Source: Heteronotia binoei
Lineage: Eukaryota
Assembly: GCF_032191835.1 (NCBI RefSeq)
Contig: NC_083229.1
Coordinates: 73,470,001 to 73,534,000, forward strand
Direction of reading: 5' to 3'
Length of the DNA: 64,000 nt
Made by a program: the position numbers and the translations under genes. Below are positions 25,994 to 59,961 of this stretch, one piece after another. The notes under the pieces were generated by a model, which was given only the letters and a program-made list of their open reading frames with translations, did not search any database and had not been told where the DNA came from. Positions within the stretch are counted from its first letter, which is position 1; the number at the start of each line of letters is the position of its first letter.

Positions 25994-26968
25994 ATGGCGG
26001 GCAAGCGGCCTAGAGATGACGTTGATGAATTTGGCGTTTCACCAAAGAGCAAACAGTTGAAAATTAAAGACTTTTTTGGACCAAAGACAAAGCAAGCTGG
26101 GCACTCTGTGGAGTATAATATCAAGACAGCTAACCGTTTTACCCCACTTGAGGAACATTTAGACCTACCAGAGGAAGTGGAGTGTAGTTGCTCGCCTCGG
26201 CCGGTTGGGAGGGCAGCAGCTGTGGATGATTCTGGGGCGTGGCAGTTGCCCAGCAAGAATTTGACTGAGGGGGACTGTGTTGCATCAGCAGGCAGCAATC
26301 TGCTTGACCTAATTGCAAGAACTGTTGATTGCATTTTTCAAGGTATGGAGGAGATTTCGAACCAACTTAAATCTCTTACAGCAGCGATAGTAGGACTGTC
26401 CCTCTCAGAGAATAGTAATCAACATATGCCAATCAGATCATTAACTTTGAAAAATTTTAGCAGTCCACGGAGGCCTGGGCAGCTTACACCCCAGAGAGAG
26501 AAAGGTGAGAACTATCAGCAATTGATTCTCCAGCCATGTAAGATCTGCTTGATGGTATGTAAGTACAGGGGATCATATCCATACTGGGGAAATAAATTCA
26601 TGGCTAAGAGTCGGCTTAGCGAACTTTTGAGGATTAATCCAGCTACAATTGACCTTATATCAATAGAGCCGCTCAATCATCAGAGCCAAGCAAAGAAAGT
26701 TTTACTCTCTTTTTCTTCCCCTAACGTCCCCACTTTACTTCTCAGACAAAAAATGAAACTGAGCACAAAAGGGGTTTTTCCGGTACGTGTATTCCAAGAC
26801 AATGTTGTTCGGGTCCTATATCCTATGAGGCCTTGTGTCAACACTTGCTCTAATAATAGACGTGGAACGCAGAATTTTGCTACTCCCCCAAAGGCAGATC
26901 AGAGGAATCTATCCTCTGTTGGTCTACCAGCTTCTGTAAGCAAGTTGGGAGTGATTCCCATGATATGA
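25994..26968 (+). CDS. LINE ORF1a, 324 aa (basic N-terminus with PIP box, NRFxxL motif, helical segment, RRM-like region)
   Basis: Open 975-nt frame directly upstream of the EN-coding frame. It contains KRPR, QLKIKDFF and NRFTPL. The RRM-like assignment of the KICLMV...KKVLLSFSS...FPVRVF region is inference. Confidence 0.7.
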   Translation: MAGKRPRDDVDEFGVSPKSKQLKIKDFFGPKTKQAGHSVEYNIKTANRFTPLEEHLDLPEEVECSCSPRPVGRAAAVDDSGAWQLPSKNLTEGDCVASAGSNLLDLIARTVDCIFQGMEEISNQLKSLTAAIVGLSLSENSNQHMPIRSLTLKNFSSPRRPGQLTPQREKGENYQQLILQPCKICLMVCKYRGSYPYWGNKFMAKSRLSELLRINPATIDLISIEPLNHQSQAKKVLLSFSSPNVPTLLLRQKMKLSTKGVFPVRVFQDNVVRVLYPMRPCVNTCSNNRRGTQNFATPPKADQRNLSSVGLPASVSKLGVIPMI

Positions 26969-27486
26969 GGACGGAGTCCGAGGGTGTTTCTTCAGGTCAA
27001 ACTATGGAGGGCATTACTTCGCTGGCTTGTCAGATGGGAGATGGAAATGGCTGGCTAGAGAGCACTGAGGAAAAAACGCTGCTGCAAGATTTTGCATACC
27101 TGCCAGCGGGGGATCAAACAGCTATACTTTCCAGACTGGGCGGGGTTTATAAGAGATTGGAAGAAGTTTACCAAGCCCGTCTGGAGAAGGAGGCATCAGT
27201 GGACAAATCGGTAGCAAGGGTTGATAGCCTAGGGGAGTTTAACCAGGGAACTGGGGCCGCAGGAGTGAACCCCTCCTTGCCCACATACGCAGCCCAAATT
27301 TCAGGGAGGACAAATGAAGTGAGCCCCACCGCGGAAAAGGACTGCCATTATGGATTTTGCCCCCATTTGTCAGATAATCCTGAGGTCACCAAGCAAAAGG
27401 TCAAAGAAGGACTGAAGAATCAGAGCAACAATGGATGTGTATTCCAGGATGCCAATGGGGTCCTGGATGCAATAGAGACAGATTGA
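26860..27486 (+). CDS. LINE ORF1b (-1 frame relative to ORF1a; 173 aa from the ATG at 26965)
   Basis: The frame is open from 26860 (after TAG 26857-26859) to TGA 27484-27486. The ATG overlaps the ORF1a stop as ATGA at 26965-26968. Confidence 0.6.
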   Translation, partial: TWNAEFCYSPKGRSEESILCWSTSFCKQVGSDSHDMRTESEGVSSGQTMEGITSLACQMGDGNGWLESTEEKTLLQDFAYLPAGDQTAILSRLGGVYKRLEEVYQARLEKEASVDKSVARVDSLGEFNQGTGAAGVNPSLPTYAAQISGRTNEVSPTAEKDCHYGFCPHLSDNPEVTKQKVKEGLKNQSNNGCVFQDANGVLDAIETD

Positions 27487-28148
27487 CTGACCCCTAGCCA
27501 ACAGAAGGAGGGTTTGACATTCCATTCTCTCTCTGTAATATCATGGAACATCATGGGATGGGCTGCTAGATCTAGGGAACCAGATGCCAAGAACCTCTTG
27601 AAGAAATATGATGTTATACTCCTCCAGGAGACTTGGTCCTTAGAGTCTATGACTCTGGACGGATATAACATATATGAAGCCCAGGCTGAGCCGTCAGTGA
27701 GAGGTAGAGCCAAGGGAGGTTTGGGAATACTAATATCAACAGCTCTGAGAGTCCAAGTCATCCAACCACCTTTCTATACCAGAATGGCAATGGCTCTGAT
27801 CCTCAAATTTAAAAAAATTGATTGTTTGTTTTTGAATGTCTATATTCCCCCCACTAAAATCAAGGCCCACACAGAGCTTGCCTGGAGAGATTTGGAGAAT
27901 TATATGGAGGAGTTATTTAGGACACACCCGACAGCGTATGTTATAGTGGGAGGTGATTTTAATGCTAGATTGGGAAAAGATGATAAGTCTTTAAATAGGG
28001 GATACGATGTCTGTTTTCAGTTCGCCGAGTTGCCCAATTTGCCCCATGAAAGAATATCTAAAGATATGAAGTGCAATTATGCTGGTCGTCTATTAGATCG
28101 CACGGCTAGGGCCCTAGACCTAAAAATTTTAAATGGTTCCCACACTAA
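27487..28148 (+). CDS. N-terminal APE endonuclease of LINE ORF2, truncated
   Basis: Motifs SWNIMG, LLQETW, GRAKGGLGIL, LNVYIPP and GGDFNARLG. In frame with ORF1b after a single TGA. The last residues of the listed ORF (GLDKDQ*) come from the TSD and host flank. Confidence 0.92.
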
Positions 28149-28159
28149 TGATAAGGGGC

Positions 28160-28560
28160 TGGATAAGGACCAATAAACTGAAGCTCTGTCCAAACAAGAT
28201 TAATAGATGGCTTGGCTGGCCATAGAAGTAGTATTTGGTTCATTCTGGATGAGGCTGTACTCTGTTTTAAGAGCTAGATTTGTGGTTTTCTGATGCAGTT
28301 AGACCTTAATTATGGACACCCACATGCTGTCTGCCATTCAGAACACCTTTTGCCAGTGTCAGTATGCCACCTTTTTTGGGCAACCATAGTCTTGCAACAA
28401 TTATCCCCACTTTAGTAGCATCCGATCAATGCTGATTCAGAAAATCAGCCTATCATCACAGTCTATATCTTATTTCAAAGGGCTATGAAAGCACAGCCCT
28501 AATTTCTACCTGCTCACAATAGTTGGATTTGGGCTCAATGTATAGGACCTGTGACCATCA
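28160..28560 (+). mobile_element. Old L2/CR1-group RT fragment, right part of the host
   Basis: TGG ATA AGG ACC AAT AAA CTG AAG CTC TGT CCA AAC AAG reads WIRTNKLKLCPNK, resembling the squamate L2-type W.R.NKLKLNPDKTE motif. Confidence 0.7.
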
Positions 28561-36041: not shown

Positions 36042-39000
36042 TCAACTTTCTAGCCAGGGGCACAAATTAAGAAGCTTCCACCGAATGTCCCGCCGTTGAC
36101 CTTCTAGTGACCACTTTAAATATGGATACCATTTCTCCTTTATCCTTTTTGTTTTTGACCCCCATTGTTCATCACGATTAAGCATAGCTATAATGTCCGA
36201 CTGAACATATTCAAATAAATAATTATGCCAGTTTTGCTCCGTCCATTTGGTTTTATCCTTCCAGCCAAAGGCTATTACAGCCTTGCCAGCTAGCACCATT
36301 GCTTTGAATAGATCCAGCCCTTCTTTATTGATTCCGTATTTATTTAATATGCTCCCGAACATTAAATCTAGATCTATCGTTGGTCTTATAGCAAAAAAGT
36401 TATGGATATGCTCTATTACCTTTTCCCAAAAGGGTTTAACTTCTGAGCATTCCCACCACATGTGGGAATACCATCCTTTTTTCTTTCCACAGTGCCAACA
36501 GTTAGAATTCAAACCCTGGAACATATTGGCTAATGTTGCTGGTGTTCTGTACCATTTTGTGAGGAACTTTAACTCCAGTTCTCTAAATTTATGCATTTTG
36601 AGCTGATGTATACCTTTCTTGAGACTGTCAAATACATTATCAGCTAAGTTGGTTTCAGAGCTCCATTTTTTTTTAACTAAATTTTTTATCTCCTCCTTAT
36701 CCGTCGTCATTTTCCTATATATCCTTCCTACTGTCCCTTTCTTTGTTTTTATCATCCCTTTTAACAACTCCTCCATTGGTTCTCCTTCAGTCACCAGTCT
36801 GTCTTCTATTGTCTTCCTAATTCTGTTATATAATCCTGTTATTTTCAGCCAATATTTCCTACCTATTTCATCGTATAGCGTTTGTAATGGTTTGAGTGTC
36901 TGCCCAACTAACATATCTTGTAGCTTGTTATACCCTTTTTTACTGAGTAATCTCCACCATCCTTTATCGTCATTCTTTTCATCCAAGGCCTCTAATGGGG
37001 TTTGTTTAGATGTTCCCTTTAACCATTTTAATTGCCATTTTCTCCAAATCATTAGTGCTGTTTTCCTCGGTCCTGTTTCTAATATGTTAACTTTGATCTT
37101 GCGTCCAGTGAAAACCCCTAAATTCCCTATTCCATTATTTGCCTCATTCTCTACTCTTACCCACTTCCTCTCCCTTTCCTCTCCTATTTCCATTAATGCT
37201 TTTAATTGAAATGACTCATAGTAACTCCTCAGATCTGGGGCCCCCCAACCCATGTTTGTATTATGCGCATATATGAAATGCCTTGAAACTCTACTTTTTT
37301 TGCTACCGAATATCCATTCTTTTATTTTCGCGTTCCAACTATCGAGTTTTTGTTTTTTAATTTCTAAAGGTATCGTTTGGAATAAGTACAATAGTTTCGA
37401 AGTCCAAAACATTTTCGCTGTATTAATCTTGGTTGTTATGTTTGACATCTTCTTGCCCCATCTCTTCATATCTTTTACTATCGTACTCCATATTCTGTTA
37501 TAATACTTTTCTACCAACTTTTTAACATTTTTGACTAAGTCTATTCCTAAATATCTGATTTTCTTGACCCCTAGTCCTATCCCCGTTCGTTCATGAATCT
37601 CTTTCCTTTCCTCTTTTTTTACATTAATGTACATTATTTCTGATTTTGCCATATTGATTTTTAGTCCTGAGTTTGATTCAAAGTCCTCTAATATAATCTG
37701 TATCTCCTTTACTGCTTCTTTTGGATTAACCATGACTATAATCAGATCGTCTGCAAACAAGTTCAACTTAATTTCTTCCTTGCCTAAATGACATCCTTCA
37801 ATTCTCCCCGAGTTTCTAAGACGTTGGGCTAACTGTTCCATTGCCATTATGAAGAAAAAGGGGGAGATCGGGCATCCCTGCCTAACTCCCCTCTGGATTG
37901 CAAATTGTGCTGTGTGTTCTCCATTAAGTCTAACTACAGCTGTACCTTCTCTATATATCTCCTTAAATGCCCTTATTGTTGATTGACTTATCCCATATTT
38001 ATCCATAACTGTCCACAAAAAATTATGTGACAATGTATCAAAGGCTTTATAAACATCTAGCTTCAATAACGCCAATTTCCCGGACTTGTTATGGCTCAAG
38101 ACATTTATTATGTTTCGGATTGGATGTGCAATGTTCCTACCTTCTACAAAACCATATTGGTCTTCTTTTATAACTTTTTGTATAATATTTTTAAGCCTAT
38201 TGGCCATTACTTTGGCAAAAATTTTATAATCCTGATTCAATAGGCTAATTGGTCTGTATGATCCTACTTCTTGAGGATCCTTTTGGGGTTTTAAAATCAC
38301 TGTGATTTCTGCCTTTCTCCATGTGTCTGGAGCTATGCCCCCTTTAAGTATATTATTAAATACTTCTTGCAATTCTGGTACTAATATTTCTCTCATTTCC
38401 TTATAAAATTCTGCTGAGAATCCATCCAGTCCAGGAGATTTTCCTACCTTTAAACTATCTATCACTCTTTCAATCTCTTGTCTTGTTATATTGTCCTCTA
38501 ATCCTCTCTGCTCTGTATCTGTCAACCTTACTCCTATCTCTTCTTGAAAATCCTTCACTCCTTTTTCTCCATATAAGTCTTTATAAAAAGTCTCAAATGC
38601 TGCTTTTATTTCCTCTGAATTCTGTGTTAGCTTTTTATCCACTCTGATACTTCTCACACTTTGCCTTTGTTTCTTATTTTTTAGAAAATTTGCTAGTCTC
38701 TTAGCTGAGTTAAGAGTATTTCTCTGGTATTCATTTTTTACCATGACCTGTTTCCTCCATAATGCCATAGAGTCTAGATCATCTAGTTTTTTCTGTAAAT
38801 CCCTAATTAACTTGTGTCTAATGGGGCAAAACTTCTGAACTTGGTCTTTTTGCAGTTTACCTAATTCTTGAAGCCTGCCTTCTCTGTCTGCATACCATTT
38901 TTTCTTTATCTCCTTTTCTTTCATAATACATTGTCCTCTGATCACCGCCTTAGCTGCGTCCCATAAGATATTTGTTCCCACTGTACCTCTATTCTCTTGA

Positions 39001-58063: not shown

Positions 58064-59961
58064 TCTCTCTCGGCTTGGCTTCGCGAACGAAGATTTAAGA
58101 AGGGTGCAATAGTCCACGTTTGCTGCAGGCTCGCTGGTGGCTGACAAGACCAATGTGGGACAGGCAGGTCCGGCCACAGCGGCTGCAGGGAAAAGTCTGA
58201 TTTAGGGTTGGTCCTGTAGCAGTGCGATTCTTCCTCAATCTCCTTTTGTCCTCAAGACCAGCTATGCGCGTGTTCTCAAAGGAAGAGACAGCCTGGTGGA
58301 TGGTGTGCCTCCATGCTTTGCGATCTGAGGCTAGGTCAGACCACTGGTGATGGTTGATGTGACAGGTGCTAAGGGATTTCTTCAAGGAGTCCTTGTACCT
58401 CTTCTTTGGTGCCCCTCTATTTCGATGGCCGGTGGAGAGTTCGCCATACAGGGCAATCTTGGGAAGGCGGTGGTTTTCCATCCTAGAAATATGCCCTGCC
58501 CAGCGCAGCTACGTCTTCAACAGCAGTGCCTCGATGCTGGTAACCTCTGCCCGCTTGAGGACTTCAGTGTTGGTCACAAAGTCACTCCAGTGGATGTTGA
58601 GGATGGTGCGAAGGCAGCGCTGATGAAAGCGCTCAAGGAGTCGCAGGTGATGACGGTATAAAACCCACGATTCGGAGCCATAGATGAGGGTTGTCATCAC
58701 AACCGCTTTGTAAACATTGATCTTTGTGCCTTTTTTCAGATGCTTATTGCTCCACACTCTTTTGTGCAGTCGGCCAAATGCACGGTTTGCCTTTGCCAGC
58801 CTGTTGTCAATCTCCTTGTCGATCTTGGCATCTGAGGAGATGATGCACCCCAGGTAGCTGAACTGCTGGACTGTCTTCAGAACTGATTCACCCACAGTGA
58901 TGCAGGGAGGGTGATAATCTTCCTGGGGTGCAGGCTGGTGGAGAACTTCTGTCTTCTTCAGACTAACTTCTAGGCCGAATAGCTTGGCAGCCTCTGCAAA
59001 GCAGGACGTCATATGCTGCAGAGCTGATACCGAGTGGGAGACGAGTGCAGCATCATCAGCAAACAGTAGCTCTCGGATGAGTTTTTCCATTGTCTTGGAG
59101 TGTGCCTTTAGTCGCCTCAGGTTGAACAGGCTGCCATCGGTGCGATAGCGGATGTAGACACCATCGTCCTCATCTAGATCTACTGCGGCTCTTTGAAGCA
59201 TCATGCTAAAGAAGATCGTAAAGAGAGTTGGCGCGAGAACGCAGCCTTGCTTTACACCTGTGCCTATTGGGAAGGGCTCCGAGAGGTCGTTGCAGTGTCT
59301 GACTTGGCCTCGCTGGTCTTCGTGTAGCTGGATGATCATGCTGAGGAACCTTGGGGGACATCCTAAACGTTCCAAGATTTGCCACAGGCCTTTCCTGCTA
59401 ACGGTATCGAAAGCTTTGGTAAGGTCGACAAAAGTCACATACAGACCCTTGTTCTGTTCCCTGCATTTCTCTTGGAGCTGCCTGAGAACAAATACCATGT
59501 CGGTGGTGCTCCTGTTAGCTCTGAAGCCGCACTGGCTCTCTGGGAGGAGTTCTTCTGCAATGGTGGGCACCAGTCTGTTCAGGAGTATTCTGGCGAGGAT
59601 TTTGCCTGCGATGGAGAGCAGGGTTATCCCCCGGTAGTTGGAGCAGTCTGACTTTTCCCCTTTGTTCTTGTATAGGGTGATGATGATTGCATCGCGAAAG
59701 TCCTGTGGTAATTTGCCTTGTTCCCAGCAGGTGACAAGTACTTTGTGAAGTGAGCTATGTAGTACTGTGCCCCCATGCTTCCAGATCTCTGGTGGAATTC
59801 CATCAACTCCTGCTGCCTTGCCACTTTTCAGTTGCTTGATGGCTTTAACAGTCTCTTCTAGGGTGGGGATCTCATCCAACTCTGTTTTCACCGGTTGAAG
59901 TGGGGTGAGGTGGATTGCTGAATCTTGAACTACGCGGTTGGCACTGAAGAGAACTTTTCAG
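58064..59961 (-). mobile_element. 5'-truncated RTE-clade LINE (RT plus C-terminal C2H2 finger), young
   Basis: TSD ATTTGCACAC at 58054-58063 and 59962-59971, with a (GA)4 tail. The 460-aa and 128-aa ORFs are in frame, separated by one TAG at 58509-58511 (LLKT*LRWAGH). Motifs GKAAGVDGIP, NYRGITLLS, DLTKAFD, QGCVLAP, FADD and CSRC..SH. Confidence 0.95.

Follow-up and report, generated by a model that had tools for sequence, protein, structure and literature searches.

The locus studied here raises the question of how the second open reading frame of a LINE is translated when no start codon is at hand. The way in which bicistronic LINE RNAs give rise to ORF2 protein has long been debated, and the answers so far have been models of unconventional reinitiation (L1, SART1) and 2A peptides. 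The window, by which we mean the whole stretch of 64,000 nucleotides that was analysed (Heteronotia binoei, contig NC_083229.1, positions 73,470,001 to 73,534,000), contains a LINE ORF1 and an APE-type endonuclease that lie in one frame on either side of a UGA followed by C. A preliminary description, made from the letters alone, had proposed that ORF2 is produced here as an ORF1-ORF2 fusion by stop-codon readthrough. The features considered below are as follows.

25994 to 26930, plus strand: 5' part of ORF1, in frame 2, recognized as an open reading frame with 37.5% identity to the ORF1 of the related locus L011.
26930 to 26931, plus strand: break private to this copy, which is one letter short here according to genomic reads of other copies.
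26932 to 27483, plus strand: 3' part of ORF1 ("ORF1b"), in frame 1, with the C-terminal motif NNGCVFQDANGVLDAIETD common to relatives.
27484 to 27487, plus strand: stop TGA of ORF1 plus the C at +4 (UGA-CUG), the candidate readthrough site, with TGA+C kept in relatives.
27487 to 27537, plus strand: linker from the stop to the APE, 17 codons without an ATG, with coding-type evolution in the ORF2 frame.
27538 to 28152, plus strand: APE domain of ORF2, the N-terminal ~205 residues, recognized by a PF03372 match, homologues and tblastn.
27553 to 27555, plus strand: first in-frame ATG after the stop, two codons past the Asn of SWN.

What these features mark out is the junction of ORF1 and ORF2 in an old and inactive LINE copy, which belongs to a multi-copy, APE-type family of a reptile. 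The piece after the stop matched Pfam family PF03372 (Exo_endo_phos) over 27487-28173 with an E value of 3.6e-11, the match beginning at residue 19 of that piece, and the catalytic Glu of QETW lies at 27628-27630. Homology of the APE to the relatives P0005, P0006, P0007 and P0014 stopped at 28152 (tblastn). In P0006 and P0007, a reverse transcriptase (RT) follows the APE (RVT_1, E 4.5e-36), whereas tblastn found no RT of the element on the plus strand after the APE within the window, and thus the window copy is a truncated member of its LINE family: a dead copy, 3'-truncated, frameshifted and without an RT. [quoted passage not shown] Self-BLAST found no second copy of the element within the window. 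Whole-genome reads of this species, aligned at a likeness threshold of 80%, covered the stretch at a depth of ~12-30 per run, and nearly all of them were 80-95% alike to the window copy, which points to a diverged multi-copy family. In two deep RNA-seq libraries of this species from 2026, just 1 and 3 reads fell over the site, without splice joints at the stop. Locus-specific 31-mers from window positions 26000-28170 were held to 59% and 30% by two metatranscriptomic assemblies of one study, which indicates some transcription or DNA carry-over. Elsewhere in the window, RT fragments of other families lie on the minus strand at 37494-38639 and 58527-59870, being 26-31% identical to the RT of P0006/P0007.

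Among 1.8 billion representative proteins, 625 APE homologues were found, many of them APE-RT proteins of ~1100 aa; only 3 close APE relatives were present in the 90% clustered database. Placement in a clade was attempted by PDB sequence search, Pfam and ESM Atlas, and its yield was limited to the statement that, on sequence comparison, the element is an APE+RT LINE and not an L1. In the PDB sequence search, the APE had no match to human L1 ORF2p, and only the RT core of P0006 matched that protein (E 2e-25), with R2 nearly as good (2e-20). The ORF1 had no Pfam match, including to the L1-type Transposase_22. A WFDxEC-type motif after the APE and a 4-nt microsatellite tail in L007 presumably recall the CR1/L2/Jockey side. 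Vingi is by description a single-ORF element. Among the relatives, P0004 comes from the annotation of Rhineura floridana.

At the junction itself, the window reads GAG ACA GAT TGA CTG ACC CCT, with the TGA at 27484-27486 and the C at 27487. The ORF1b frame (26965-27483) resumes after the stop as LTPSQQKEGLTFHSLSVISWNIMGW, so that two coding regions stand in one frame with a single stop between them, as readthrough would require. The catalytic Asn of SWN (27547-27549) corresponds in the alignment to the first catalytic strand conserved among LINE endonucleases, and from the stop to SWN there is no in-frame ATG in the window. At the ATG at 27553, the Met is unconserved, relatives having A, M or N. 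The preliminary description was therefore correct in its coordinates, in placing ORF1b and the endonuclease in one frame across UGA-C and in finding no usable ATG, since the one at 27553 follows SWN. The same pattern recurs in relatives, including L001, which is 84% identical to the window in DNA and shares with it the TGA-CTG, the 17-codon length of the spacer and the frame. Among the best 40 of 154 variant places in the genomic reads, the TGA was absent from those at which the majority differs from the window, and no indel was found over 26931-27698. The family majority thus keeps the TGA and the spacer length, while minority variants of the TGA may exist, given that this refers to the best 40 of 154 places.

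If the linker between the stop and the APE is translated, it should evolve as coding sequence. We compared the 17 codons after the stop between the window and L001 and obtained a pN/pS of 0.21 in the ORF2 frame, with 10.5 synonymous versus 6.5 nonsynonymous changes and a distribution of 4/3/10 over the codon positions, compared with a pN/pS of ~1.4-1.5 in the other two frames (Fisher p 2.6e-4, for one pair and 17 codons). The value is close to that of the APE in the same pair (pN/pS 0.25), and ORF1b had a dN/dS of 0.37, its two indels relative to L001 (18 and 6 nt) being in frame. In a second close pair, L041 versus L042, the 15 codons from the stop to the first ATG had a pN/pS of 0.30 and the end of ORF1 one of 0.27, both based on few changes. 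Coding constraint thus begins directly 3' of the stop, albeit in small samples, and because synonymous changes appear from the third post-stop codon on, translation must enter the frame at or before the stop.

To see how widely this junction is kept, DNA was fetched around eleven of the 625 homologues, which together with the window gives 13 loci in 11 families; the families are 30-50% identical at the amino acid level over the first 110 APE residues, with window/L001 and L041/L042 as close pairs. The last in-frame stop before the APE was TGA+C in 12 of the 13 loci (10 of the 11 families). The contexts were GAT TGA CTG (window, L001), GAT TGA CTC (L011), TGA CTT (L006), TGA CAA CTA (L003, L002), TGA CAT (L008, L009), TGA CCC (L010) and TGA CCA (L041, L042, L007). 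Positions +5/+6 vary among the families (CU, CA, CC). A long ORF1 of 72 to 658 open codons that ends at this stop in the ORF2 frame was found in nine loci from seven families (window, L001, L003/L004, L006, L008, L009, L011 and L041/L042), among them the intact element L003/L004, with an ORF1 of 649 aa, an ORF2 of 1113 aa and the same junction architecture. Across these seven families, the spacing from the stop to the Trp was 14, 14, 14, 17, 19, 39 and 57 codons, and the C terminus of ORF1 also varied in length and sequence. Such variation implies many indels, all of them frame preserving, which argues that selection rather than inertia holds the frame.

Not all loci were as clear, and three families (L007, L002 and L005) deviate. 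L010 has its ORF1 off by one nucleotide in a decayed copy, L005 (NCBI assembly GCA_009733165.1) contains several frameshifts, and in L002 an ORF1-like frame is offset by one nucleotide just before the TGA. In L007 (1818-1935), the stop of ORF1 and the start of ORF2 share the letters ATGA, and ORF2 is in the -1 frame; this copy is decayed, and a private indel is possible. A -1 frameshift model for L002 and L007 was set aside: the L002 overlap has no slippery heptamer, and the offsets may reflect either private indels or a genuinely different arrangement. The end of the L002 contig (3620-3666) is sequencing adapter (CTGTCTCTTATACACATCT...), the last ~45 nt not belonging to the element.

Among the findings that, in the preliminary description, would speak against readthrough were a sense codon in place of the stop in most copies and an in-frame ATG upstream of SWN. 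Regarding the first, the apparent ORF1-APE fusions among the homologues were artefacts: in P0084 (L006), TGA is read as Trp and three TGAs are passed, and in P0025 (L005), a 48-nt "intron" of the gene model removes two stops, while the family majority keeps the TGA, as far as the best 40 of 154 places tell. Two further candidates, P0026 and P0075, were discarded since the supposed ORF1 motif sits 3' of the TGA-CCA stop. The second finding holds for part of the families. An ATG occurs 5-16 codons after the stop in L003, L008 and L041, which means that an ATG-independent route is not the sole option in every family, whereas the interval from the stop to the catalytic Asn is free of ATG codons in the window, L001, L006, L009, L011 and L002. 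In L002, the ORF2 frame is open for ~1120 codons despite the missing ATG, so that the absence of an AUG is not just decay.

As a control, we scanned JGI metagenome contigs with the APE alignment and obtained 29 distant LINE loci (22-34% identity) in 18 families. Their last in-frame stops were, by family, TAA-A in six, TGA-A in four, TAG-G in three, TAA-C and TGA-G in two each and TGA-C in one, and where an upstream ORF1 was visible, it lay in the ORF2 frame in ~2 of 6 families. TGA-C is thus found in 10 of 11 target versus 1 of 18 control families (Fisher p 6e-6), and, with a chance expectation of 1/3, at least 7 of 10 families would be in frame with a probability of 0.02; shared ancestry weakens both values, as the families are not fully independent. 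Together, these comparisons describe a conserved stop of the leaky type with variable flanks, which is a pattern expected of readthrough.

The context of the stop is in line with this reading. Termination is weakest at a UGA with C at +4. Readthrough of stop codons is raised by a C at this position, type II readthrough motifs are UGACUA and UGACGG, and UGACUG, UGACUU and UGACUC are variants at viral type II sites of alphavirus and dicistrovirus-like genomes, while motifs of the CAAUUA type are active in mammalian cells (PMC13517186). The window (UGACUG), L006 (UGACUU) and L011 (UGACUC) carry such catalogued type II variants, and L003 and L002 carry UGA-CAA-CUA. In seven loci, the sequence 3' of the stop showed no RNA structure that was stable or conserved, with z-scores of -0.05 to +1.4 versus shuffles; a stimulatory structure of this kind, which some types of readthrough require and which is optional for UGACUA-like sites, is thus lacking, and efficiency would be low and dependent on the sequence context alone.

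Taken together, we propose, with a probability of roughly 55%, that ORF2 is made by low-level, context-driven readthrough of UGA-C in the family, though not in the dead window copy. In the living ancestors of this copy and in the wider squamate LINE clade, one long ORF1 with an RRM-like core would end in UGA-C, and ORF2, the APE followed by the RT, would follow in frame behind a linker that is short and variable, in many cases with no AUG. Most ribosomes would stop at the weak UGA-C and release ORF1p, a few per cent would decode the UGA with a near-cognate tRNA and produce an ORF1-ORF2 fusion, and readthrough would thereby set a high ratio of ORF1p to ORF2p. The fusion put forward in the preliminary description thus finds support in the shared frame, the conserved UGA-C, the missing AUG and the coding linker, and the ATG of some relatives, the deviating junctions of L007, L002 and L005 and the lack of a downstream structure in the seven loci speak against it. 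That a whole clade of squamate LINEs makes its endonuclease and RT only as an ORF1p-ORF2p fusion via UGA-C readthrough is a bolder claim, which we consider tentative and somewhat doubtful.

The main competitor of readthrough is termination-coupled restart without an AUG, in which ribosomes would end ORF1 at the UGA, remain on the mRNA and resume at or close to the next codon, yielding separate ORF1p and ORF2p. Termination-reinitiation has been reviewed for SART1 (UAAUG) and L1 (PMC5972666, PMC3894237), and restart at the first post-stop codon would likewise explain the coding linker. The stop-start overlap of L007 and the ATG 5-16 codons after the stop in three of the relatives also fit this model. 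An ATGA overlap is typical of stop-start coupling. However, restart needs neither a shared frame nor UGA+C, yet both are strongly enriched, and five families have no AUG at all. Moreover, the first post-stop codon is no conserved near-cognate start but CUG, CUC, CUU, CAA, CAU, CCA or CCC, and initiation at the CUG after the stop was discarded as a candidate because this codon is unconserved in relatives. We therefore regard restart as unlikely, though a serious contender, and we infer readthrough at the ribosome from the frame and stop context that restart would leave unexplained.

Alternatively, there may be no recoding at all: the TGA without an ATG would be an accident of decay, and living elements would start ORF2 at an ordinary ATG, lost from this copy. 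Indeed, the copy is dead, being frameshifted at 26930 and truncated at 28152, and the distant homologues P0002, P0004, P0005 and P0006 begin with Met 4-40 residues before SWN. On the other hand, the junction is the same in L001, which is 84% identical, an ATG is also missing from L006, L009, L011 and the long-open L002, the genomic majority matches the window in both the TGA and the length of the spacer (among the best 40 of 154 places), and the linker is under purifying selection. This makes decay alone an improbable explanation.

Far less probable still is the scheme of the preliminary description in which one mRNA undergoes two sequential recoding events, a -1 frameshift at ~26965 at an "upstream slip site" and then UGA readthrough. 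In its favor, ORF1, which lies in frame 2 of the window, overlaps at 26965-26968 with ORF1b, which lies in frame 1 (173 codons, 26965-27486). Behind 26930, however, an extra C is present in all covering genomic reads from other copies (4 of 4 and 6 of 6), and the loose ends of a further 10+6 reads clipped at 26931 fit the same extra letter. The letter missing from the window copy at 26930 shifts the remainder of ORF1 to frame 1 and thereby creates the apparent slip site. Consistent with this, one continuous ORF1 in L011 spans the homology of both ORF1 and ORF1b and ends in the C-terminal motif of ORF1b, and L003 (649 aa) and L009 (521 aa) each have a single continuous ORF1 over both parts. Since the extra letter is found in all covering reads and the ORF1 of L011 is continuous, ORF1 and ORF1b are one ORF1, split in the window copy by a private loss of 1 nt, and the slip site is dismissed. 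The ORF1 of the window is related to that of L011 with an E value of 3e-23 and to that of L009 with one of 5e-8. ORF1b alone returned no homologues at E<=0.01. The L011 ORF1 ends in ...NGCVIYDTNKTLDQLVEID and that of L008 in ...GAVFMDSMGILNQITELK, each directly before the stop.

The core of ORF1 (26522-26806) is predicted to fold as beta-alpha-beta-beta-alpha-beta, a ferredoxin- or RRM-like arrangement (pLDDT ~90), and RRM domains are among its top PDB fold matches, although these are weak (E ~0.01-0.04). Such a predicted RRM-like core fits an RNA-binding ORF1p. Near the N terminus of ORF1, at window positions 26054-26077, lies QLKIKDFF, which resembles a PIP box (PCNA interacting), and similar motifs occur at the same place in L003 (QSKITQYF) and L009 (QLKIETFL). 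In human L1, the PIP box sits in ORF2p; in the window element, it would be in ORF1p.

Finally, decoding of the UGA as selenocysteine has nothing in its favor beyond the in-frame UGA and can be set aside as negligible, given that searches of the window stretch, L001, L002, L003 and L009 turned up neither a SECIS nor any other Rfam family and that the UGA lies in a variable linker rather than in an active site.

Readthrough between a structural gene and a polymerase gene has known counterparts. The gag-pol readthrough of MoMLV is of type III, with UAG-GGA plus a pseudoknot. As in gammaretroviral gag-pol, the LINE has a nucleic-acid-binding structural gene and a polymerase gene in one frame with a single stop between them, and a minority fusion would set the stoichiometry if the predicted readthrough takes place. 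Unlike in gag-pol, the stop is UGA-C (type II-like) instead of UAG-G, there is no pseudoknot or stem-loop downstream in the seven loci and no protease, and the element is a non-LTR one. With alphavirus nsP3/nsP4 and mammalian UGA-CUAG genes, the junction shares the stop and the +4 base and, in the case of nsP3/nsP4, the position of the polymerase downstream of a stop that in the LINE is predicted to be leaky. It differs from the alphaviruses, which often have a downstream stem-loop, in the lack of such a structure and in its varying +5/+6 bases. The strategy is thus a predicted one, well supported by comparison, that may be seen as the LINE counterpart of gag-pol and nsP3/nsP4 readthrough. Among LINEs, L1 reinitiation, the SART1 UAAUG and the 2A "StopGo" of Ingi/L1Tc and some CR1 elements solve the same problem, that of making little ORF2p from a bicistronic RNA, with the same gene order of ORF1 followed by APE-RT. 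These models yield separate proteins, and neither a shared frame nor a weak stop is needed for them. Reviews of LINE ORF2 strategies list reinitiation, IRES and 2A only, without readthrough (PMC3894237, PMC5972666), and for human L1 ORF2 an unconventional AUG-independent termination/reinitiation has been proposed (PMC5972666). No description of ORF1-ORF2 readthrough in a LINE was found in the literature searched, in which subscription papers were sparsely covered. An in-frame amber stop that separates orf1 from orf2 has been noted for some Arabidopsis ATLN LINEs.

The clade offers a simple and directly testable alternative for the translation of ORF2. If it was confirmed, readthrough would join the repertoire of LINEs, and gene finders and curators of transposable elements would have to drop the demand for an ATG at the start of ORF2. 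Under the bolder claim of a clade that makes only the fusion, the RT would be covalently tethered to an RNA-binding protein, which could by itself explain both cis-preference and the ratio of ORF1p to ORF2p, and non-LTR retrotransposons would possess a true gag-pol strategy. A natural ORF1p-ORF2p fusion would also matter for cis-preference and for efforts to turn reptile LINEs into gene-writing tools.

A similar arrangement was seen outside the squamate clade. The locus L017 (131-4651; JGI contig Ga0209567_10004049) is an apparently intact, unrelated, L1-like metagenomic LINE. Its ORF1, which has a tail rich in RGG, spans at least 449 codons, its ORF2 frame is open over at least 1057 codons, and the two lie in one frame with a single TAG GGA between them. 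No ATG precedes SWN in this element, and TAG GGA is the type III hexanucleotide of gammaretroviruses. The junction of another locus, L028, reads TAG GGG. In-frame leaky stops may recur in other LINE clades, with L017 hinting at more than one origin of the strategy, if it is real.
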